Shown: piece after piece, positions 1-54,427 of the stretch
Layout: each line of letters opens with the position of its first letter
Position numbering within the stretch: position 1 is the stretch's first letter
Assembly: GCA_038496445.1 (NCBI GenBank)
Contig: JALMLS010000048.1
Span: 1-64,000, forward strand
Length of the DNA: 64,000 nt
Source of the DNA: Trichosphaerium sp. ATCC 40318
Lineage: Eukaryota > Protista > Tubulinea
Direction of reading: 5' to 3'
Translations under genes and position numbers: made by a program
Notes under the pieces: generated by a model
Seen by the model: only the letters and a program-made list of their open reading frames with translations
Told to the model about the DNA's origin: nothing
Database searches by the model: none

Positions 1-2495
1 TAATGGTACGCGTTTTTGAAATATTTTTCCAACTAAATTGCTATCCGTTTTGCTTTCTTTCGCGGGAATGACCTTGCATTTAACAACGCGTTCATCAGTG
101 AGATATTAACGTTGGTAGAATTCTTCAGTCAATACCACTCACAAATACATCAACCACCTTCACCATACGCTCCTTCAGCACCTCCAATCGATGAAGACGA
201 GCTACTACATGAAGTTCCTTCATCACGCTCTCCGCCTGACACACATCATTCTCAAACAGCCCATTCCGGTCACATAGTCCAGTGGAACCTTTGTTCTTGG
301 TACGCTAACAGGATAAAAAAAAACAAGTTGCGAAAAAACCGCCTGAGAGTTCCAAATATGGTTATTTCGGTATTTGTTTGGTTGATGGTGGCAACTGTTT
401 TGCGTTTGTTGTGTGAAACAATTGTGTTTTTCAAAAATCAAAGCAACGTTTGGATCATTTGGTTCTAGAGTTTGACATTTTTTTTGTTTTTTTGAATTTT
501 ATTATTTACTGTTTCACAGCGTCCTGGAATTCTCCTTCAGTGCTGGGGTATTTAGGAAGGGCAGTTGGTATTGGAGTACGCTTATCAGTAAGTTAGAACA
601 ACCAGAAAATTTAGAGAAAGGAGAAACAATTACATCATCCATACTCTGTTTTCTTTTTCCTCAACTCCAGTCATTCTACAAAAGAGCAAATACCTCAAGG
701 TTCTATTCTGGTGATAACAAATTTTTAACACTGATGGCGTAGGAGTTTGAGGGAAAAGAGAAGCACATTAGTTTGGACTGTTTACTTTCCGTGTAGAAAT
801 TAGTTTTGTAGGTATCTAATGTGTTTAGAACATTCCGCACTACAATAAATCAAATAGCCCAACGGATGCCTTCTCTTAGATCTCTTGATGAACCAAGCAG
901 TTCTCCACCTCCTCCTATATTAACGCAACCTAATAGAGGTCGTTCTCCACTTCTTAATGAACCAGAAGTAATTTTACAAACCAACAGCAATTCATCAACA
1001 GGTACGCCACAAAATGCGAACACGCCAGAATTTTGCATAATTTGATTGAATCAATTTTTTGTTCTGATTTCATGTCAAGGCGATAGACAAGCGTCCAATA
1101 CTATTCCATCACCTAGAAGAGAGTCTATGGATATTGTATCACCTTCCGAAGATGACCCTGAAGCGACTGATAATGAAGATAATCAAAGACATCCAGTTCG
1201 TCAGTCAGTTGATATTATGAAATATGGAAAGTTTGAAATCAAACAGTCACACTTGGAAAAACTGTTTAGAAAGTGGTGCGAGTCTCTATTCTTCACACCT
1301 ACAAAGTACGTTAGGATCAAATTCACTCATCAAAACCAGTGAGCTCAGTGTGTTTATGTATTTGTAACACATGCAACGTTGAAGAGAGTGAAGCCAACTT
1401 TCATTCCTTTTTGGCTGTTTAAGGCAGACATTGATGTTAAGTACACTGGTGAAGCCTTGTGTGATCGTATGGCACCTCAGGTATGTGTTTATACTATGCT
1501 TAACTGATTTAAAGTGTTAACATATTTGAACAGGTGAATACAACGCTAAGAACTTTGGGTTACACATGTTGGTACAAGGACTGCTATTATAAGAATGTTT
1601 TGGTTTGTGGTCCTTGGAATCGTTGTCCATAAGAATTATTAAAAGATAGTATAAAACATGGACAAGAATCGATCGTATATGGCTGCAATAGGTCAACAAA
1701 CAAGATCCTTTATTCTAGGAGCCGGCTCGAGCATACCTCTATGTAAACTTCTTCAACTTTACAGAAACCTCTTTTTGTGCGAAGATAATGGTTTTTAATA
1801 AGCGTTGTTAGGCTCAAAATACGTTTGAATGGGTAATGGATCAGATAACATTGTTCATTGGCACACGTAAGGAGAAGTTTGAAGATGATAAGCCACCTGA
1901 TATACAACCACTTTCACATAAACCACTTGAAGAATCTTGGGATGGTCAAGGTGAGATTTTTTCGAAAAACAATTAGTTTGATCGTTCTACGACTAAACGT
2001 GCTTACATATAGTACTTGTTTATTTCGTTGTAATTATTTGTCAATTAACCTTTATTCTAAGGTATGGCTACAATTCGTGACAGCGAATTAAAGCAATGTA
2101 CAGCTCTTGTTAAAAAAGAAAATAACGCACAAAATGTGAAGAATGTTAACGTTCACATTGAGCTTCAACAGCGACAACATATGCTTGTATATTTACCAGT
2201 ATATATTGGATCATATACATTTGAATCTAAAGACTATTTAATAGTATTCAATGGCCAATCAGGAAAGATATATGCACAATGGTATGTCAAACAAACGAAA
2301 TTTTTTTTTGAAGTAACAACGCTTTTTTCTTTCTTTTATCACGTGATATAGTATCTAGTCACATTTTCTTATTATTATTTATTCTTATTCATTTATAGGC
2401 CTGTAACAACTATGGGTACAATTGTTCGTGCTGGAATCAGCACAGTGTCCTCTATTTTCTCTTCGTTTACGTCATCTTCCAAGGCGAATCCTTGA
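1..2495 (+). CDS. Mirror copy (5'-truncated at window edge) of the RING-finger gene at 4560-7473
   Basis: Left arm of the palindrome carries the same exons, ending ...SSFTSSSKANP-TGA at 2495. Confidence 0.6.
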
Positions 2496-3158
2496 TTTTT
2501 TTTTCTGCTTGCTTTGGATGCCACTAACAACATAAAATCGCAAACTAGTACTAGCACTCTGAACAGAATACGCTATTGTAAAACAACATCATGTAAATAA
2601 AAAACAAATACAATAATTTGTAATCAAGGCCAAGGCACACGCAAACAACCATTTATTTTTATGACTATACTACAAAATCCCTTTGTATGTTTGAATAATT
2701 AAAACCCTTACACCACTATCTTCCTCATCCAGCCAACGTTTCGTATGTCCTTTATACTTTATGTAGTCTTTACCAGAAAAGCATATTGGGAAGTTTGATT
2801 ATCTTAATGTAATGTCCTCAGCTTTTATGGTGTAGATCAAACAAGTAGTGAATGTCGTTTAGAGGTCGGTTGTACGGTTTAGCTATTTACCAAAAAGAGC
2901 TCAAATGACTACAAACAAGCTGTGTTAAGTACAGTGTCGGTCAAATTATTACAACGAACAGAATATTGGCTTAAAACCTTGTGTTCACCTTCAACGCATA
3001 AGTTGTCCACAACCTAGGCTAGAATATTGCAACAAAGATATGACGTGATTCTATATTCGGAATGAGTTGTCGCGTGGAGAGCAAAACAGGAAAGAAGGGT
3101 CGCGTGGAAAATCAAACACGAATTTACATTCAAGAGATAGCAATACCTTCTGTAAACG

Positions 3159-3487
3159 ATGAAGTACTTTAGGATTGGAATGCAGATATCATATTTTCTC
3201 TTTGTGGCGGCATTGACAATAATCCGTTATCCTCATAAAAGAAAAAGTAAGAATGAGAAAGTTGTGCAGGACAACAAAGGGTTTGTGGAAAAATGTATGT
3301 TGGTTATAGTTTCAATTGGCATGGGTGGACTCCCTCCTTTGAACATGATTTTCCCAAGCTTGCTTGAGTTTGCCAATTACCCCGATTGCCCAGAAGCTGG
3401 TTTCATTGGCATTTGTTTAATGCCATTGTCTATGTGGCTGTTTTATAGATCACATAAAGACCTTGGTACGAATTGGAGTGTTTCACT
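3159..3487 (+). pseudogene. Truncated mirror copy of the ICMT-family gene, cut by the fold-back junction
   Basis: Identical to 3897..3569(-) up to ...GTNWSVSL, then runs into the loop and stops. Confidence 0.7.
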
Positions 3488-3897
3488 ATCCAAATAGAGG
3501 TATACATAGGATGTCTGATATACTTGTATACACCGCCTGTAACAAGACTGTGCTTTTCTCGGATTTCAAGTGAAACACTCCAATTCGTACCAAGGTCTTT
3601 ATGTGATCTATAAAACAGCCACATAGACAATGGCATTAAACAAATGCCAATGAAACCAGCTTCTGGGCAATCGGGGTAATTGGCAAACTCAAGCAAGCTT
3701 GGGAAAATCATGTTCAAAGGAGGGAGTCCACCCATGCCAATTGAAACTATAACCAACATACATTTTTCCACAAACCCTTTGTTGTCCTGCACAACTTTCT
3801 CATTCTTACTTTTTCTTTTATGAGGATAACGGATTATTGTCAATGCCGCCACAAAGAGAAAATATGATATCTGCATTCCAATCCTAAAGTACTTCAT
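3488..3897 (-). CDS. Isoprenylcysteine carboxyl methyltransferase (ICMT/Ste14) family, copy 1, 3'-truncated at palindrome centre
   Basis: LGTNWSVSLEIREKHSLVTGGVYKYIRHPMY is the ICMT/PEMT-type motif. Intronless. The sequence after YTSIWI is the fold-back arm. Confidence 0.85.
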
Positions 3898-4559
3898 CGT
3901 TTACAGAAGGTATTGCTATCTCTTGAATGTAAATTCGTGTTTGATTTTCCACGCGACCCTTCTTTCCTGTTTTGCTCTCCACGCGACAACTCATTCCGAA
4001 TATAGAATCACGTCATATCTTTGTTGCAATATTCTAGCCTAGGTTGTGGACAACTTATGCGTTGAAGGTGAACACAAGGTTTTAAGCCAATATTCTGTTC
4101 GTTGTAATAATTTGACCGACACTGTACTTAACACAGCTTGTTTGTAGTCATTTGAGCTCTTTTTGGTAAATAGCTAAACCGTACAACCGACCTCTAAACG
4201 ACATTCACTACTTGTTTGATCTACACCATAAAAGCTGAGGACATTACATTAAGATAATCAAACTTCCCAATATGCTTTTCTGGTAAAGACTACATAAAGT
4301 ATAAAGGACATACGAAACGTTGGCTGGATGAGGAAGATAGTGGTGTAAGGGTTTAATTATTCAAACATACAAAGGGATTTTGTAGTATAGTCATAAAAAT
4401 AAATGGTTGTTTGCGTGTGCCTTGGCCTTGATTACAAATTATTGTATTTGTTTTTTATTTACATGATGTTGTTTTACAATAGCGTATTCTGTTCAGAGTG
4501 CTAGTACTAGTTTGCGATTTTATGTTGTTAGTGGCATCCAAAGCAAGCAGAAAAAAAAA

Positions 4560-7473
4560 TCAAGGATTCGCCTTGGAAGATGACGTAAACGAAGAGAAAA
4601 TAGAGGACACTGTGCTGATTCCAGCACGAACAATTGTACCCATAGTTGTTACAGGCCTATAAATGAATAAGAATAAATAATAATAAGAAAATGTGACTAG
4701 ATACTATATCACGTGATAAAAGAAAGAAAAAAGCGTTGTTACTTCAAAAAAAAATTTCGTTTGTTTGACATACCATTGTGCATATATCTTTCCTGATTGG
4801 CCATTGAATACTATTAAATAGTCTTTAGATTCAAATGTATATGATCCAATATATACTGGTAAATATACAAGCATATGTTGTCGCTGTTGAAGCTCAATGT
4901 GAACGTTAACATTCTTCACATTTTGTGCGTTATTTTCTTTTTTAACAAGAGCTGTACATTGCTTTAATTCGCTGTCACGAATTGTAGCCATACCTTAGAA
5001 TAAAGGTTAATTGACAAATAATTACAACGAAATAAACAAGTACTATATGTAAGCACGTTTAGTCGTAGAACGATCAAACTAATTGTTTTTCGAAAAAATC
5101 TCACCTTGACCATCCCAAGATTCTTCAAGTGGTTTATGTGAAAGTGGTTGTATATCAGGTGGCTTATCATCTTCAAACTTCTCCTTACGTGTGCCAATGA
5201 ACAATGTTATCTGATCCATTACCCATTCAAACGTATTTTGAGCCTAACAACGCTTATTAAAAACCATTTCAATCGAAGCCAAAAAATCCTAGTGAGAAAA
5301 AAAAAAGAAAAAAAAAAAGAAGCGAGCGAGACAAGCTACAGAAAAATTACGCCTGTTGACATACAGATACTATACGATCAAGATCCCAATCTCCATCTTT
5401 TATACTATCTTTTAATAATTCTATATGTGACAACGATTCCAAGGCACCACAAACCAAAACATTCTTATAAGTAGCAGTCCTTGTACCAACATGTGTAACC
5501 CAAGTTCTTAGCGTTGTATTCACCTGTTCAAATATGTTAACACTTTAAATCAGTTAAGCATAGTATAAACACATACCTGAGGTGCCATACGATCACACAA
5601 GGCTTCACCAGTGTACTTAACATCAATGTCTGCCTTAAACAGCCAAAAAGGAATGAAAGTTGGCTTCACTCTCTTCAACGTTGCATGTGTTACAAACCTA
5701 CATAAACACACTGAGCTCACTGGTTTTGAGTGAATTTGATCCTAACGTACTTTGTAGGTGTGAAGAATAGAGACTCGCACCACTTTCTAAACAGTTTTTC
5801 CAAGTGTGACTGTTTGATTTCAAACTTTCCATATTTCATAATATCAACTGACTGACGAACTGGATGTCTTTGATTATCTTCATTATCAGTCGCTTCAGGG
5901 TCATCTTCGGAAGGTGATACAATATCCATAGACTCTCTTCTAGGTGATGGAATAGTATTTGACGCTTGTCTATCGCCTTGACATGAAATCAGAACAAAAA
6001 TTGATTCAATCAAATTATGCAAAATTCTGGCGTGTTCGCATTTTGTGGCGTACCTGTTGATGAATTGCTGTTGGTTTGTAAAATTACTTCTGGTTCATTA
6101 AGAAGTGGAGAACGACCTCTATTAGGTTGCGTTAATATAGGAGGAGGTGGAGAACTGCTTGGTTCATCAAGAGATCTAAGAGAAGGCATCCGTTGGGCTA
6201 TTTGATTTATTGTAGGTGCGGAATGTTCTAAACACATTAGATACCTACAAAACTAATTTCTACACGGAAAGTAAACAGTCCAAACTAATGTGCTTCTCTT
6301 TTCCCTCAAACTCCTACGCCATCAGTGTAAAAAATTGTTATCACCAGAATAGAACCTTGAGGTATTTGCTCTTTTGTAGAATGACTGGAGTTGAGGAAAA
6401 AGAAAACAGAGTATGGATGATGTAATTGTTTCTCCTTTCTCTAAATTTTCTGGTTGTTCTAACTTACTGATAAGCGTACCTCCAATACCAACTGCCCTTC
6501 CTAAATACCCCAGCACTGAAGGAGAATTCCCAGGACGCTGTGAAACAGTAAATAATAAAATTCAAAAAAAAACAAAAAAATGTCAAACTCTAGAACCAAA
6601 TGATCCAAACGTTGCCTTGATTTTTGAAACACAAATTGTTTCACACAACAAACGCAAAACAGTTGCCACCATCAACCAAACAAATACCGAAATAACCATA
6701 TTTGGGAACTCTCAGGCGGTTTTTTCGCAACTTGTTTTTTTTTATCCTGTTAGCGTACCAAGAACAAAGGTTCCACTGGACTATGTGACCGGAATGGGCT
6801 GTTTTGAGAATGATGTGTGTCAGGCGGAGAGCGTGATGAAGGAACTTCATGTAGTAGCTCGTCTTCATCGATTGGAGGTGCTGAAGGAGCGTATGGTGAA
6901 GGTGGTTGATGTATTTGTGAGTGGTATTGACTGAAGAATTCTACCAACGTTAATATCTCACTGATGAACGCGTTGTTAAATGCAAGGTCATTCCCGCGAA
7001 AGAAAGCAAAACGGATAGCAATTTAGTTGGAAATATTTCAAAAACGCGTACCATTAGTCTTTGGACGTTCAGGGCTAGCTGGTATACGCGTAGGTTGACT
7101 TGACGCAAGACTAATCTTTCGTTTGTTATCCTTGAGTTTGGTTACAATGCTTTGAAGGCTTGTGTTCTTCCGTATGCTTAGAACGCCTTCAGGATAGGAA
7201 GAGGGTTCTCTAAAGTAAACGTTACATAATAAAAAGTCTGGGAAACGTACATACCTGCACAACGGGCAATCAATCACGCAGTTATCGCTCTGTTTCCCTA
7301 AACACAGTGAGTCAGCCGTTAGAATTTACAATTTACGTACAAATGTCGATTAAACACATTGTACAATACGAGTGCATGCACTTTAATGTTCTGGGTTCTG
7401 TAAACAGTGATAAACATACTGCACAAACTAATTCTTCCTCCAAATCAGCTACTAGCTCTGTTTCCTTTGCCAT
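4560..7473 (-). CDS. Spliced C3HC4 RING-finger protein (putative E3 ligase) with Pro/Ser-rich middle and a conserved C-terminal domain
   Basis: N-terminus MAKETELVADLEEELVCAVCLSLFTEPRTLKCMHSYCTMCL...IDCPLCR is a TRIM-like RING. Later exons read KLFRKWCESLFFTP, FIPFWLFKADIDVKYTGE and LVYLPVYIGSYTFESKDYLIVFNGQSGKIYAQ. GT-AG introns. Confidence 0.8.
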
Positions 7474-47625: not shown

Positions 47626-50600
47626 TTATTTGGTAGGTGAACTTGTCATCCAAAATTCTAGCAGAGTTTTGCCATGTATGTCTGAATGTTTAATAAACGG
47701 ATTGGACATATTTAATGGCTCCCCATTTATCATCAATTTTTCTACATAAACATTCGACTCTGAGACATTATGTGCAATAACGACCTAACAGTGAAATCAT
47801 TTGGTTTTTTTTTTGTTATAAATGCAGTTTAGTCTTTATGACGTACTAAATCACCATCATCGCGGTTTATAGTCAAACTTGAGAACAAGGGAGATCCGAT
47901 CATATATCTATCTGAACCAGAAAGCGGATAAAATCCAAGAGCACCAAAAACATACCAAGCCGACATTGTACCTTTTTAAGTTTCAGTTTTTTTTTTCTTA
48001 TTTAATTCTTTAAAAACAATGTACCATAGTCATCATTACCAGGTAGACCATCAGGCCCAACGCCTAGTTCCAATTATTCTATCAAATTGTTTTACAGGTT
48101 ATCTTTACTTACCGTATTGTTCCTTCATGTTGTACTTAACCCACTTCTGTGTTAAGTCTGGTCTTCCAGCGAAATCAAATAAGTATGCAGCAAGCAAATC
48201 TTCCTCATTACCAGCCCAGTAATATGGGTTAGGCAAAGCATTAGGGAAGTACTCAGCACGCGAGAAAAATATATCAAGTTGCTCAACGAAGTACTCTTGG
48301 CTTCCAAAAAGCTTGATAAGTCCAGGAACATCTCCAGGAACAAACCTAATAAATAGTGTTAAATTCTAAGCAAAAAAAAAAAAAGAAGAAAATGCTACGA
48401 CTTTGTTAGTGCAAAACTCGTACCATCTGTAGTGCCAAGCGTCACCTTCAACATATCGTTCATCGAATACGTCGATCCAAGTTAGTGGGCATTCCCATTT
48501 TCCTTCTGAAGTCTTAGGACAGAAAAACTTATACTCTTTGTTCCAAACGTTCTAAATCACGTGGTCAGAAAAAAGATTTTAACAAGAATTCAGTTTGAAT
48601 TTGGATTACCATGTAATTCTTTGATGAGTTTCTGAACATTTCAGCATCAGTCGTGTGATTAAGGTACTCAGCTATAGTAGATAACGCCCAGTCGTCATCT
48701 AAGGTAATAAAACATCAGCGAGTTTTTTTTTAAAGCGTAAACTTTCGGTTGTACAAGAGTAATCTTGAGTCAATACAGCTCCGTGTTTATCTTTTTCAAA
48801 TGGGATGTAGCCGATAGTATGCCAATCTTGAGTGTCTGTACGACCATTGTGCCCCTGAGGGTATAACGATCCATTCTTTAATCCTTGATAAACCATCTCC
48901 AAATCGAAATCAATGAATCCTTAACAACAGTCAGAGCTTCACGAATACATTAAGACCAAATTATGTATTCACAAAACTATTCACCTTTGGCTATAGCATC
49001 AGCAATAATAACACTACGCAGAAAAAGTTAGAATAAATCCAAAAAAAGTACATCAAAAAAAATTTTAAAAAAGTAGGCATTTGATACGTGCGTTGTGTGC
49101 TGGCCTTCCATACAATCTGTATATCCTACACAAAGTATGTCCGTTAATCAGATTTGACTACGTTTATTGGTTGTACCATTGGCAAGCGGCCATCGCGGGA
49201 AATCTCCGCCTTGCTCATACATTAGGATTAATGATTTTACAATATCGTTAAATCTATCCGGTTGTATTATTGCCAACCAGGGGAACTCTGTTCTATGTAC
49301 ATCCCATATACTCATATCGCTGTAAAAACCTTTCTGATTTCCTTCAAGAGAATGCACCTTGTCATCAAAACCCATATATTCGCCACCTGATTGCAGCATA
49401 AAAAACTATTATTTTAAGGTGCTGCTATACCTGGTTCACTAAATACTGTTGGCGCCATTAGAGTGTGGTAGTAAGCGGTATAAAACTTTATACGATCTTC
49501 GTCAGTCCCACCAACAACTTGGATACGATCAAGCTCTGTTTGCCAAACATTCTATTTAACAAGTATCAGATAAGAAAATTTGCTTTTTCTATCAATTAGA
49601 AACTTACTGTTGTTTCTGCTAGGACGGTATCAAAGTCTCCTCCTTTTACCTCACTAACAATGTTACTCCTCGCGTGATCGATACTTATCGAAGAAATTCC
49701 AACGATCATTTCTAACACAGTATTAATCATAACGAAGTTCGTTAGGTAGCACCGATATTGTTCACTGAATTCTTATCAAAAACTATAAATCCTCCAATAT
49801 CTTTACCGCGAGCAGACGCATCCGCTGTAATTTTATCATCATTCCATACACCAGAACTAGAAAATATGCCAGTTTTGAATTGAGCAACAAAGTATGAGTT
49901 GTATCCTCCAAAACGACCTGATAAACTTCCCTTTTGGTATAAAAAGTTAGCATAGTTCAACGTTTCTGGTCCATACCATATTTCTAACCCAACCGCTCAC
50001 TTCTTGCTTACTTTGATCTATAAATATCGACGCATTTCCACAACCTCCTTCTTCCAAAGTATGACTAGTCAGAACGTCAAATAGACGTTAAAAAAGTCTT
50101 TTTTGACACTTGCCTAATATCGAAAAGGATAACTTTTTCCTTGTTGTCAACGAAATTATATCGATGCACTCCAACATGCTCAGTAGCAGTTAACTCAACT
50201 TGAATATTGTATCTTTCTAGAGAAACACTATAATACCTAACACCAGCTTAACATTCTCACTACACCCAGAAGTATGACTTACCCTGGCTTTGCCACTTCA
50301 GTTTTATGCGAATACTTTGAATAAAATCCGTAGTCCTTAACATCACTTGACGTAGGCACGCGATCAATAGGCATAACGCCAATAGTACCTGTTAAAGAAG
50401 AAAAAGATTACACAAAGAAAAGTTGTCCACATTTTTTACAAAAAGCTTACCGTAGTCTAATGCTCCTGAACCAACCATGTGCGTATGAGAAAAAACACGA
50501 ATGTATTCATCTGTATTTGGGTTTTAAGAACTTATGTTTGTTGTGTGGGCTCTGTACCGTCGTAGTAGTAGCCTCCAAAGTGATTAAACGGTAAGAATAT

Positions 50601-50840
50601 ATTATCATACGCTACAGTGTCAGGACCAACACGTGCTAATCCAAAAGGCCTTTGAGCGCCAGGAGGAGTGCTTCCGATTCTAAAAAGCGCAAATAAACAC
50701 GTGAATATGGAAGTATAAGGAAAGTACCCATAACCAGTACCACCGCTGCCAATATGTGGGTCCACGTGGTCGTAATTAGATGCGCAAATGCCAAGTACAA
50801 ATACAAGTAATGAAAGGCAGATAAGCTTGTATATTGACAT
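47626..50840 (-). CDS. Glycoside hydrolase family 92 alpha-1,2-mannosidase, secreted/lysosomal
   Basis: PPGAQRPFG, FSHTHMVGSG, YSDMSIWDVHRT, YVEGDAWHY, YWAGNEED, LPGNDDYGTMSAWYVFGALGFYP. Confidence 0.95.
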
Positions 50841-50984
50841 CTTTTCTGAGCTTTCGGTCAAAACTGTGGTCAACGTCACACTCTGACATTTTGTTTTACA
50901 TTGTGCTTACATTGCCTGTGTTAGGTAATCTTTTTAAATAGAATTTATGAGGTTTATTGGTTATTTGAACCGTTGAGGTGATAG

Positions 50985-53307
50985 TTATTCGCCGTGTATG
51001 CTTTTTTTGTGGGTTTTTGATTCCTTTCCAGAAGGTGATATTACCTCAATCTTCATGGCATTAGAGGAACGCATTCTTGCAAGTTGTACAAGTTGAGCTC
51101 TATCTTTAGGCTGAATAGGCTTTGAAGCACCTGAAAACAAAGTTTTAAAAGGTATAAAGTTATATCTGTTTACCTCGCATCCATCTTCCTCTTGCTTGAT
51201 GTGAGCGCGATCTTGCTCTCGTTTGAGAAGGTGCCGATAAACCTTGTCGACTTTTACTTGATTTAGATCTACTACTTGGAGAAATAGCCCTTGGGCTTGA
51301 ACCAGAAAACCCACTCTTCAAAGAGTAAATTAGTAGGGGTACATAAAACTAAAAGCTAGTTCCTACTTTTTTCTTGCGAGGGCGTCGCTCCAATTCTTGT
51401 ATAATAGGAACTGGTGTTGATATTGCAAGCGTCAACCTATTATTTTCAGGAGCCTGAATAAAGTGTTGGTATCAAAGACAGGAGTTTAAATAAGGTACCG
51501 GTGAGATTTGAATTGTTCTCTTTCTTGGTATGTTAGATAAAGTTCCTTCGCCGATATCGTTCGTCTTGATGTACCACAGGAGTAACACAGACAAGAACTG
51601 AACGCTTTTCTACAACATGACAATGTAAGGGAGGAATAGAGTAAGGCCAAGACGTACTTGAGATAGAACTAAGCCAACCATTGGATCAGCCTATAAGCCA
51701 TTAGTAAGTGTATGTTTCGTTCTTTAGTCCTACCTCTTTACTACGCCACAAGTTTGGTGCTACACAAATAGCTAGATTTTGAGGAGTCATCATATTAACT
51801 CCGTGATGCAACGCAGTCATCGCAAGCCTGTAAAAATCATCAAAATTATCAAATTATGCAAAATAGATTACAAGTCCAAAAGCCAGAATAAGATTGAGCG
51901 TTCTTGTTCTGGTAAGGTTTCAACGATTGCTGTAGCTGCTTTTTCATCGAGTTCTTTCATAAGCTCGGAAGCAGGAATAGGAGAAAAAAGAGGTTGAGGC
52001 ATCTCTCTGAACCACAGCTATTGAAACAAAATTATTAAGACCACGTGATAACAAAACAAAAAAATTGAAAAGTTTTTCGCCCTGGCCTGTCTAGTAAAAG
52101 CAGTACATATGCCATAATAACAATACTTGCAGTATTGAAATGGGTATGATATTTTCTTAATTGTGCTCACCTTGATCAAAGTTGCTAAATTGTATGCGTC
52201 GCTTGTCTTTGCAAACTTTTTCTTATTCATAGCTTGCTTTAGCTGCTGACAAACGCCAATATCTCCATTGATACGAAATATACCCTCCTTTTTCAGACCG
52301 TTACATTTAATTAACTCGTCCTTTAAAAGCTCGAGAATGAGCGGTACTTCGCGACCTAACAGCGGAAGGCAATAAAGAATTGTTGTACAACAAAAAAAAA
52401 TAGAGCTCATCAGTACCTTGCCACTCAACTTTCTCTAGCGTGTCAACATCACTTCCAAACCTACATTTTACATAAGATACACAATAAACACCACTTTAAG
52501 TACTTACCAACCACATTCAGTGTGTCTCAAGCGAACAGGAAGAAAACATTCAACACCTAGAAACAATGACCAAAACATGAATAAAAATTATCTATGGTGT
52601 GCCTCCTATTATGGCAGGGATACTACAATGAAATGTAATGTACTAGCTGTTGAAAGAAAAGAAAGAGTAAAGAACACAAAAAAGTACGCACGTGAGATCA
52701 AGTGGATGCTGAAGAGGTGACCGAAGCGTTATTTTTATCTTCACGCGTTTCTTTTTTCCCTTATTTTATTTTAGGCGAAGGGTAGTACTTGGCTTTAATT
52801 TCAAGAAATCTAGCGTACCGCGCCAATAGCTCCCCTAAATTACACTTAATTATATTATATAGTATCATATAAGTACCCATTAGGCGTTATAGCAAATTCG
52901 AAAGCTTTTGTGATCAATGCTTTGCCATTGAACGAAAACTTCACCTAAAAAAAAAACATTATTAAAAACACACTTTCCTGCTGTAAGATATAATTTTTGG
53001 CGCCTCTGTACCTTTCCTTTAGGTAAAAGAGATGTTATCTCAATATCTTCATTTACAACAACACAACTCTTCGTATCGAATAGCTGTTTATCTATGAGGA
53101 TATCCAACTCTGTTTTATTCGTCTAGACGCGAAGAAAAAAGAAAATAAATAAACACGTGATTAAAGCTTAGAAGACGCTCTAAATGAACGCACTTGGAAT
53201 AGATTAGCTTTGTTCACTACAAGTAATGAGAACATGAAGACCTAAATAAGCGTACAGGTATGTCTTCTTCCTGAAGGATTACCCTCTTTGCTAGCATGTT
53301 TGCCCAT
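50985..53307 (-). CDS. RhoGAP-domain protein
   Basis: VPLILELLKDELIKCNGLKKEGIFRING (Arg finger), LATLIK-LWFREMPQPL, MDSSNLAICVAPNLW. The start (MGKHASKE) is approximate. Confidence 0.88.
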
Positions 53308-53740
53308 TGGGGCAGGCGTGTAGGATCAACGACTTCGTGAGAAAAGTGCTTGTAAAAATGAAAACAAAAATACTACCAAAATCACTTGTCAACCGACGTC
53401 AATTGTTCGCCAGCCAGCTGTTTCAATCACCAGTGCCAAGTTTTGGAAACAAATGCCGTAAACTCACAGTTCAAGCCAAGCAAATACTCAAATAGCGTTT
53501 CAATAACAACATGTGCAAAATTTTTACAACACAAGAGCATGTAACGACGAAAAGAGCTACGGTTTTTTCAACTGTATCATCATCTTTTTAGAGCCAAAAT
53601 ATAGAGTTCAGGAGGAAGACGTTTACTTTAAAAAGAAAAGTACAAAATTAAGTGGTGATCGCGTCTCGTTGCCTTTAAATAGAAGTTGCACTCTTAGTTT
53701 ATTTAAACCATGAGTGCAACAATTAAACGAAGAAAACACT

Positions 53741-53817
53741 CTACAGGTGGGCGCTCTACCACTGAGCTACGGCGGGTAAGTCCCGCCGGGTAGGAATCGA
53801 ACCTCCGACCTCCAAAT
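53741..53817 (-). tRNA. Circularly permuted tRNA-Tyr(GUA)-like gene: 3' half (53817-53781), CTTA linker, 5' half (53776-53741)
   Basis: Minus strand reads ATTTGG AGGTC GGAGG TTCGATT CCTACC CGGCGGG A [CTTA] CCCGCCG TA GCTC AGTGGTA GAGC G CCCAC CTGTAG. Perfect 7-bp acceptor stem and D arm, canonical T loop, C1:G72 + A73 + GUA. The anticodon stem has 2 mismatches and the T stem a 1-nt bulge. Confidence 0.7.
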
Positions 53818-54276
53818 CAGAAAGACTCGATGACATCCTTGCACAACGTCAAATTAAGTCAATACAATTCATATTTATTCAACTCGCGCGACAACCAAAT
53901 TTATTGTGGTTTTAGGATAGCTCGATTGTCATAATGGTGACTCCCTTTTACGGCGTTTTACCATTGTTTAAGCCGTTGCGGTATTGAATGGATGCTAAAT
54001 GATTTAGAACGGTGTTTGTTAGCGCAAAAGGAAGTTTACAAATGTTCCTAAAAATAAACCTAAAACGTGAAAAACTGAGGGGTAACTTGGTTACAAACGT
54101 TTCTGAGATTTTTCGCAGGTGACAGTTACATGAATATTGCCACTGTCTCACAATAGTGAGTAAATGTTTTTTACGTATAGCGGTGCTTTGTAGCTTTGTT
54201 GTAGGTTTAGTACGTAAGGTACACTGCATCCTTATAAAGACAGCAGCTACATAATTTCAGCCCAACATAAAAACAG

Positions 54277-54427
54277 TGCAAGAAAGTGTTAAAGCATTGA
54301 AAGGTGTTCATTCGCTCAGTCTCAATATCAGCAGTGACAGACGGGAGTAAAAGCTCTAAAAGGGATTCATACGCTTAACATTGAGCATTGTAATGTTACA
54401 GACGAAGGAATCAAAGCGCTGAATAGT
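54277..54427 (+). pseudogene. Decayed remnant of the GVHT-type LRR family
   Basis: ESVKALKGVHSLSL...(frameshift)...VKALKGIHTLNIEHCNVTDEGIKALN matches the repeat unit of 26110-27141. Confidence 0.7.

Follow-up and report, generated by a model that had tools for sequence, protein, structure and literature searches.

The minus strand of the window, by which we mean the whole 64-kb stretch of DNA that was analyzed, carries a tRNA-Tyr(GUA) written back to front. Its 3' part lies upstream of its 5' part, a short intervening sequence closes the acceptor stem, and a tRNA with a perfect anticodon stem is obtained only if the two outer ends are joined between positions 41 and 42, that is, inside the anticodon stem. 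The best explanation, to which we assign roughly even chances, is that the locus is a true permuted nuclear tRNA-Tyr(GUA) gene whose transcript matures without a bulge-helix-bulge (BHB) motif. This reading is favored because a complete tRNA with a perfect anticodon stem arises at 41/42 and at no other junction and, furthermore, because of the isolated contigs that point to expression, the constraint on the tRNA body in a marine relative, the existence of a paralog with a changed tRNA identity and a layout that is known from permuted genes. It is weakened because only linear RNA was seen and no BHB was found, because an extra nucleotide breaks the acceptor/T-arm helix (the T stem of the window copy has an additional A, the acceptor stem of the paralog an additional C), and because leader and trailer are better conserved between the two paralogs than the tRNA body; such conserved flanks are equally compatible with a functional RNA some 190 nt in length. 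An interrupted acceptor/T-arm helix is unusual for a working cytoplasmic tRNA and, to our knowledge, no pathway has been described that cuts and joins RNA inside the anticodon stem.

Architecture of the locus

The permuted unit spans minus-strand positions 53813-53737 and consists of G42-A73, the linker CTTA and C1-G41. Together with its flanks, it can be divided into the features listed below, all on the minus strand. The TATA-like box, the intervening sequence, the T4 run and the downstream T runs were read from the sequence, the two tRNA parts from the sequence and the junction test described in the next section, the leader from the sequence and contigs, the trailer hairpin from folding, the distal trailer from a constrained fold and the minimum extent of the observed unit from the contigs of two public sequencing runs, X1 and X2.

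53871..53879, minus: TATA-like box AATAAATAT, 30-38 nt upstream of the first base under the X2 contig
53814..53841, minus: 5' leader, ending in AUUU right before G42
53781..53813, minus: 3' part of the tRNA, G42-A73, unchanged in X1, X2 and X3 (a marine-metagenome contig)
53777..53780, minus: intervening sequence CTTA, 4 nt, the loop closing the acceptor stem
53737..53776, minus: 5' part of the tRNA, C1-G41
53733..53736, minus: T4 run abutting G41, which may act as a Pol III stop or as a mark for trimming
53685..53720, minus: trailer hairpin, stem of 9 bp (GUUGCACUC/GAGUGCAAC), which can be lengthened to 53728-53672
53650..53671, minus: distal trailer, which can pair with leader positions 53840-53818 to form a possible terminal helix
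53630..53647, minus: downstream T runs (T4 at 53647-53644, T4 at 53639-53636, T5 at 53634-53630)
53658..53841, minus: observed unit, minimum extent, comprising leader, permuted tRNA, TTTT, trailer hairpin and part of the distal trailer

The upstream part G42-A73 contains two anticodon-stem bases, the variable loop AGGTC, the T arm GGAGG-TTCGATT-CCT(A)CC, CGGCGGG and the discriminator A73. The downstream part C1-G41 contains CCCGCCG, TA, the D arm GCTC-AGTGGTA-GAGC, G26 and the stretch CCCAC-CTGTAGA-GTG; the GUA anticodon at 53744-53742 thus lies in the hairpin CAC-CUGUAGA-GUG. All seven pairs of the acceptor stem CCCGCCG/CGGCGGG are Watson-Crick pairs. A reading of this DNA made from the sequence alone (the sequence-only reading) had started from the slightly shifted minus-strand interval 53817-53741 (ATTTGG AGGTC GGAGG TTCGATT CCT(A)CC CGGCGGG A / CTTA / CCCGCCG TA GCTC AGTGGTA GAGC G CCCAC CTGTAG). 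Its description of a 3' half upstream of the 5' half on the minus strand, with a CTTA linker and a perfect 7-bp acceptor stem, is borne out in every part, and so is the tRNA-Tyr architecture that it proposed. C1-G72, A73 and GUA form the eukaryotic/archaeal tyrosine identity set, and all of them are present, as are the nucleotides that make the usual tertiary interactions (T8, A14, G15:C48, G18G19, G26/A44, G46, T54-A58 and G53-C61). An extra A at 53791 breaks the T stem or, in an alternative reading, is an additional base between the T and acceptor stems. This A and the other bases are identical across the contigs of three public runs from two studies and do not stem from faulty assembly.

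The order of the two internal boxes is inverted: on the minus strand, the A box (53769-53759) comes after the B box (53803-53793). The combined T-loop/D-arm pattern has a single match in the 64-kb window and was found in none of 100 shuffled sequences; the combination is far from chance. The permuted unit is the sole tRNA-like element within the window. In the native gene order, neither ARAGORN nor the Rfam tRNA model (RF00005) reports a tRNA at the locus, as had been expected of standard tRNA scans.

The trailer is long and can be folded. The T runs at 53647-53630 are likely to be the final terminator. The duplex between leader (53840-53818) and distal trailer (53671-53650) has a predicted energy of -12.9 kcal/mol, which was equalled by 12.6% of shuffled sequences; a terminal helix can hence form, and it is not significant (p about 0.13). 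The trailer hairpin is followed by UUCUAUUU (53673-53684, minus strand), and this arrangement resembles a bacterial intrinsic terminator. The hairpin also accounts for a weak Rfam match to the Bacteroides sRNA BTnc201 (27 bits vs 105). In a eukaryote, both likenesses are probably coincidental.

The window itself is eukaryotic in character, with a GC content of 37%, only short open reading frames and proteins including F-box/WD40, LRR, ICMT, MORN, RhoGAP and GH92 types. The small RNA unit is followed, on its own (minus) strand, by a RhoGAP exon at 52018-52428 and by exons of a GH92 (alpha-mannosidase-type) protein at 49148-50879. The interval 53300-53657, which belongs to the gap separating the RhoGAP exon from the unit, has no contig depth in X1 or X2. 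At its beginning, the window contains a near-perfect palindrome (23-7036) with arms of about 3.46 kb that are 97-100% complementary and a centre of 81 nt (3488-3568), which could be either a real foldback or a long-read assembly artefact.

The break lies between positions 41 and 42

When the two parts are joined at 41/42, the anticodon stem CCCAC/GUGGG consists of five Watson-Crick pairs out of five, the loop CTGTAGA has 7 nt with T33 and R37, and the free-energy fold is a clean cloverleaf with four stems. An explicit junction test was carried out for cuts from 38 to 43 and a variable loop of 4 or 5 nt, in which a solution needs five of five pairs, a 7-nt loop, T33 and R37; 41/42 was the only solution. 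The nick is therefore located between G41, which is paired to C29, and G42, which is paired to C28. The sequence predicted across the join is ...CUGUAGAGUG|GGAGGUCGG....

The sequence-only reading had set the break at 37/38, the canonical intron site. This junction was rejected, as it leaves two C-U mismatches in the anticodon stem. The mismatches, which had been listed as a caveat, are an artefact of the 37/38 reading and vanish at 41/42; the two other caveats hold: the T stem has one nucleotide too many, and a BHB is absent. Likewise, TTTT does follow G37 after 4 nt as described, and with the break at 41/42 it directly abuts G41.

A BHB was not found in strict or relaxed geometry, either by hand or in a constrained fold that included leader and trailer. 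Inspection by hand showed that a BHB arrangement, in which positions 36-39 would have to pair with positions -6 to -3 of the leader, cannot be drawn, and in the constrained fold AUUU and UUUUCUU, which flank the nick, remain single-stranded. The route suggested previously, in which a splicing endonuclease cleaves at a BHB and a circle is formed, is thus left with no BHB to act on. Spliceosomal back-splicing was also considered and is unlikely: GU is absent after G41 and G37, and AG is absent before G42 and A38.

ARAGORN calls a tRNA in the rearranged locus sequence. However, the result does not discriminate, since the program calls a tRNA at almost any cut, including in true YrlA RNAs and tandem-tRNA controls. 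Its score is dominated by the acceptor, D and T arms, and the explicit test of the anticodon arm was therefore relied on instead.

Pattern scans of metagenome and viral contigs provided control elements for this test. Control loci that have a closed acceptor with seven of seven pairs and lack an ordinary anticodon arm are YrlA-type mimics, and none of them gave a canonical anticodon-hairpin solution. Tandem ordinary tRNAs form closed acceptor hairpins as well, and for these the junction test returns the trivial solution 43. Among the elements tested, which were taken from the matches listed, only the locus described here has an anticodon stem that is completed across both ends. No relative of the permuted unit was present among the matches listed in the scans; these comprised only YrlA-like mimics and tandem tRNAs. 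A T arm, a closed acceptor hairpin with seven of seven pairs and a D arm occur, among the matches listed, in the metagenome loci L012 (3415-3466), L017, L022, L023 and L087, and the same YrlA layout is seen in the viral loci L146, L150, L172, L177, L182 and L217. For L023, the only stem solution is non-canonical and lacks T33 or R37. L109 scores 82.4 against the YrlA model and is the only one of the Rfam-scanned metagenome loci at the gathering score; the loci with a YrlA layout named above may be divergent YrlA-like RNAs missed by the model.

Apparent transcription of the locus

Two contigs from X1 and X2, two runs of one study whose RNA nature is the tool's guess, cover the locus. The X1 contig extends from 53658 to 53836 and the X2 contig from 53663 to 53841; each is 179 nt long, isolated and 100% identical to the window. 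The contig depth is 4-6 at the unit and zero over the remaining ~820 nt of the interval 53300-54300, and there are no loose ends. The silent flanks serve as a DNA control. Most simply, the contigs stem from a discrete RNA that is 184 nt or more in length, and the locus is apparently transcribed as its own small unit. Coverage starts 30 nt downstream of the TATA-like box, the contigs run through the T4 at 53736-53733 and for at least 75 nt past it, and they end 11-16 nt before the first of the downstream T runs. The T4 run is also kept in the paralog.

Only the linear, unprocessed form was seen in the X1 and X2 contigs. A joined 41->42 form, a circle or a CCA-tailed product was not found in them, although such contigs cannot exclude rare or short forms. 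In a further run, X5, a whole-genome data set from 2026 that carries the same species label as X1 and X2, 1.7 Gb were read and no read fell on the 1-kb stretch. The explanation is either a very large genome or a label that stands for another strain or organism.

A misassembly of tandem tRNA-Tyr genes, which the sequence-only reading had named as a possible refutation, was rejected together with an ordinary tRNA gene. The flanks, CTGATTT and TTTTCTTCG, are not tRNA halves, and three independent contigs agree with the window. A tRNA-derived SINE was likewise rejected, as the B box precedes the A box, an A tail is absent and the 64-kb window holds one copy.

Conservation in a marine relative and in a cysteine-type paralog

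The marine-metagenome contig X3 covers 53732-53913. Over the tRNA body and the proximal leader (53732-53826, 95 nt), it does not differ from the window at a single position, whereas the 87 nt upstream (53827-53913) show 12 substitutions and two indels. The difference between body and upstream region (0/95 vs 14/87) is significant (Fisher p = 1.8e-5). At the TATA-like box, the AT-rich character is retained in X3 with a 1-nt deletion at 53873.

In addition, X1 holds a co-expressed paralog of 184 nt that covers the same interval and was rebuilt from the listed differences. It matches the window copy at every position of the leader (53799-53836) and of the distal trailer (53658-53687). No difference falls within these 68 nt, compared to 20 events over the remaining 111 nt (p = 4e-5). 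The anticodon of the paralog is GCA, positions 26, 38, 57 and 59 differ, and the extra A is absent. Half of its 14 substitutions fall within the 19-nt acceptor/linker zone (p = 1e-4), which reads CGG(C)AGAG-UUUU-CUCUCCG and forms seven pairs with one bulged C; the linker is TTT(T) in place of CTTA, and the first unpaired base is a U (U73). U73 is the main cysteine identity element. We also take A26 with TTCAAAT to be typical of tRNA-Cys and G26 with TTCGATT to be typical of tRNA-Tyr, an assumption that serves as a lead and not as evidence. The trailer hairpin of the paralog keeps its 9 bp, with one G-C pair changed to G-U. The two copies thus have common flanks and differ at tRNA-identity positions, and the acceptor and trailer hairpins are paired in both.

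Proposed maturation and alternative explanations

If the locus is a permuted tRNA gene, it would be transcribed from its own upstream TATA-like promoter to give a linear precursor composed of leader, G42-A73, CUUA, C1-G41, UUUU and trailer. In this precursor, every tRNA helix would already be able to form, and the sole discontinuity would be the nick in the anticodon stem, with U-rich strands on both sides. Leader and trailer would be trimmed back to G42 and G41, and an RNA ligase that seals nicks in duplexes, rather than the BHB/splicing-endonuclease route, would presumably close the break. RNase P and tRNase Z could subsequently open the CUUA loop, and CCA would be added. A bolder generalization, which we hold to be less likely than not, is that a substantial share of the cytoplasmic tRNAs of this amoeba derives from back-to-front genes in this manner, that is, with neither a BHB nor a splicing endonuclease, with a stem nick (at 41/42 in class I tRNAs) that is sealed by an Rnl2-type ligase and with U-rich tails that are trimmed. 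If such an Rnl2 route existed, it would be a new route of tRNA biogenesis and would provide the first physiological tRNA substrate of eukaryotic Rnl2-type ligases.

The main rival to a permuted tRNA gene is a tRNA mimic, which we consider possible rather than probable. The product would then be a stable RNA of ~190 nt, a eukaryotic counterpart of the YrlA-type Y RNAs, whose acceptor stays closed and which is never charged; its L-shaped tRNA-like domain, the trailer hairpin and the leader-trailer stem might, again tentatively, jointly bind tRNA-recognizing proteins or a Ro-like partner. The observation of full-length linear RNA alone, including at least 75 nt beyond TTTT, speaks for a mimic. 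The sequence-only reading had proposed that expression solely as an unprocessed RNA of ~150 nt would favor this model; linear RNA is indeed all that was seen, at a length of at least 184 nt, and the model thereby stays open. Moreover, the two paralogs agree in leader, trailer and hairpin or differ there in ways that keep the structure, the BHB is absent, and RNase P, tRNase Z and EF-1A would all be impeded by the nucleotide that bulges out of the acceptor/T helix. The best Rfam match of the region is YrlA (E = 1.8e-4), because the T arm, the closed acceptor stem and the D arm come in the same order; however, the score is 30 against a gathering threshold of 69. YrlA RNAs are furthermore described as being without an anticodon loop (10.1101/312249), whereas the RNA of the locus has a canonical one with U33, GUA and R37. 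The terminal helix on which a mimic would rely is no better than chance, and anticodon and discriminator have changed together in the paralog, for which there is no obvious reason if the RNA is never charged.

Alternatively, the locus could be a relic or repeat without any role. A tRNA duplicated in tandem would then have been stripped of its outer halves and multiplied to a few copies, and transcription would start from an AT-rich box that happens to lie upstream. The accepted origin of permuted genes is likewise a duplication followed by loss of the outer halves, and tandem identical tRNAs yield closed acceptor hairpins in the control loci, too. The extra nucleotide in the T stem, the bulge in the acceptor stem of the paralog and the low contig depth would suit such a relic, and should X1 and X2 be DNA runs of low coverage, the 179-nt island might represent a repeat present in many copies. 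We nevertheless judge a relic to be unlikely: the body is unchanged in X3 next to a diverged upstream region, the substitutions in the paralog keep the acceptor helix and the hairpin paired and cluster at identity positions, the anticodon stem is perfect only across the nick, and the contigs are free of the divergent flanks or loose ends that DNA repeats would produce. It is less probable still that the tRNA works in two pieces that are never rejoined. Here, RNase P and tRNase Z would open the CUUA loop, and leader-G42..A73-CCA and C1..G41-trailer would be held together by helices. All helices needed exist in the constrained fold (the acceptor stem, the anticodon-stem pairs and the leader-trailer helix), and the contigs contain no joined form. 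However, a helix projecting from 41/42 would probably clash with the decoding site of the ribosome, the leader-trailer helix is weak, and the data show no cut at the linker. We know of no naturally unjoined cytoplasmic tRNA. For opening of the loop there is a parallel in Mycobacterium smegmatis YrlA, which has a 7-bp acceptor stem and is cut by RNase P and provided with CCA (10.1101/312249).

Comparison with known systems

YrlA RNAs are defined by a tRNA-like domain with a closed acceptor loop, no anticodon loop and an 'anticodon stem' that continues into the 5'/3' terminal stem (10.1101/312249). The locus shares with the YrlA family (RF02553) the order of T arm, closed acceptor hairpin and D arm, the elbow nucleotides, ends that may pair and a length in the range of 100-200 nt. 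In contrast to YrlA, it is of the eukaryotic tyrosine type, belongs to class I with C1-G72 and has a canonical 7-nt anticodon loop; membership in the YrlA family was rejected based on the score of 30 vs 69 bits and the presence of this loop. If the RNA is a mimic after all, it would be the first eukaryotic tRNA mimic with a YrlA-like layout.

The split and intron-containing tRNA genes of archaea and C. merolae resemble the locus in that an interrupted tRNA has to be rejoined at the RNA level. However, their transcripts are processed by the splicing endonuclease at a BHB and by an RtcB- or Trl1-type ligase, whereas the locus presents a plain duplex nick with U-rich tails.

Permuted tRNA genes have been described in Cyanidioschyzon merolae, prasinophyte green algae, the nucleomorph of Bigelowiella natans and Thermofilum pendens, with junctions at 20/21, 37/38, 50/51 and 59/60 and intervening sequences of 1-74 nt (PMC3978253). 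No report of permuted tRNA genes in amoebae was found in the literature searched, and a review from 2026 confines the eukaryotic cases to certain unicellular algae, with all others in archaea; the suggestion that the locus belongs to a lineage for which no permuted tRNA has been described is in line with this. The locus also shows that standard tRNA finders count too few tRNA-like genes in genomes of this kind. As in the BHB-dependent permuted genes of the type described by Soma in 2007, the 3' part of the locus lies upstream of the 5' part on one strand, and the acceptor is closed by a short sequence, here of 4 nt. Further shared features are an upstream TATA-like box, a T stretch behind the 5' part, the lack of an encoded CCA and the inverted order of the A and B boxes; moreover, the rearranged locus forms a complete cloverleaf with the conserved nucleotides, the exception being the extra A at 53791. 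A permuted tRNA-Tyr(GUA) gene is also found in T. pendens. Unlike the known permuted genes, the locus has its junction at 41/42 inside the anticodon stem, its termini do not form a BHB, its host is a non-photosynthetic organism of the amoeba type, and a long trailer with a hairpin extends beyond the T stretch. It is hence not a strict member of the BHB-dependent permuted tRNA class. All permuted tRNA genes reported so far depend on the BHB signal of the tRNA-splicing machinery, and the amoeba locus differs from them in exactly this respect; it may represent a second route for rejoining tRNAs, which would bear on the roles of nick-sealing RNA ligases in eukaryotes.
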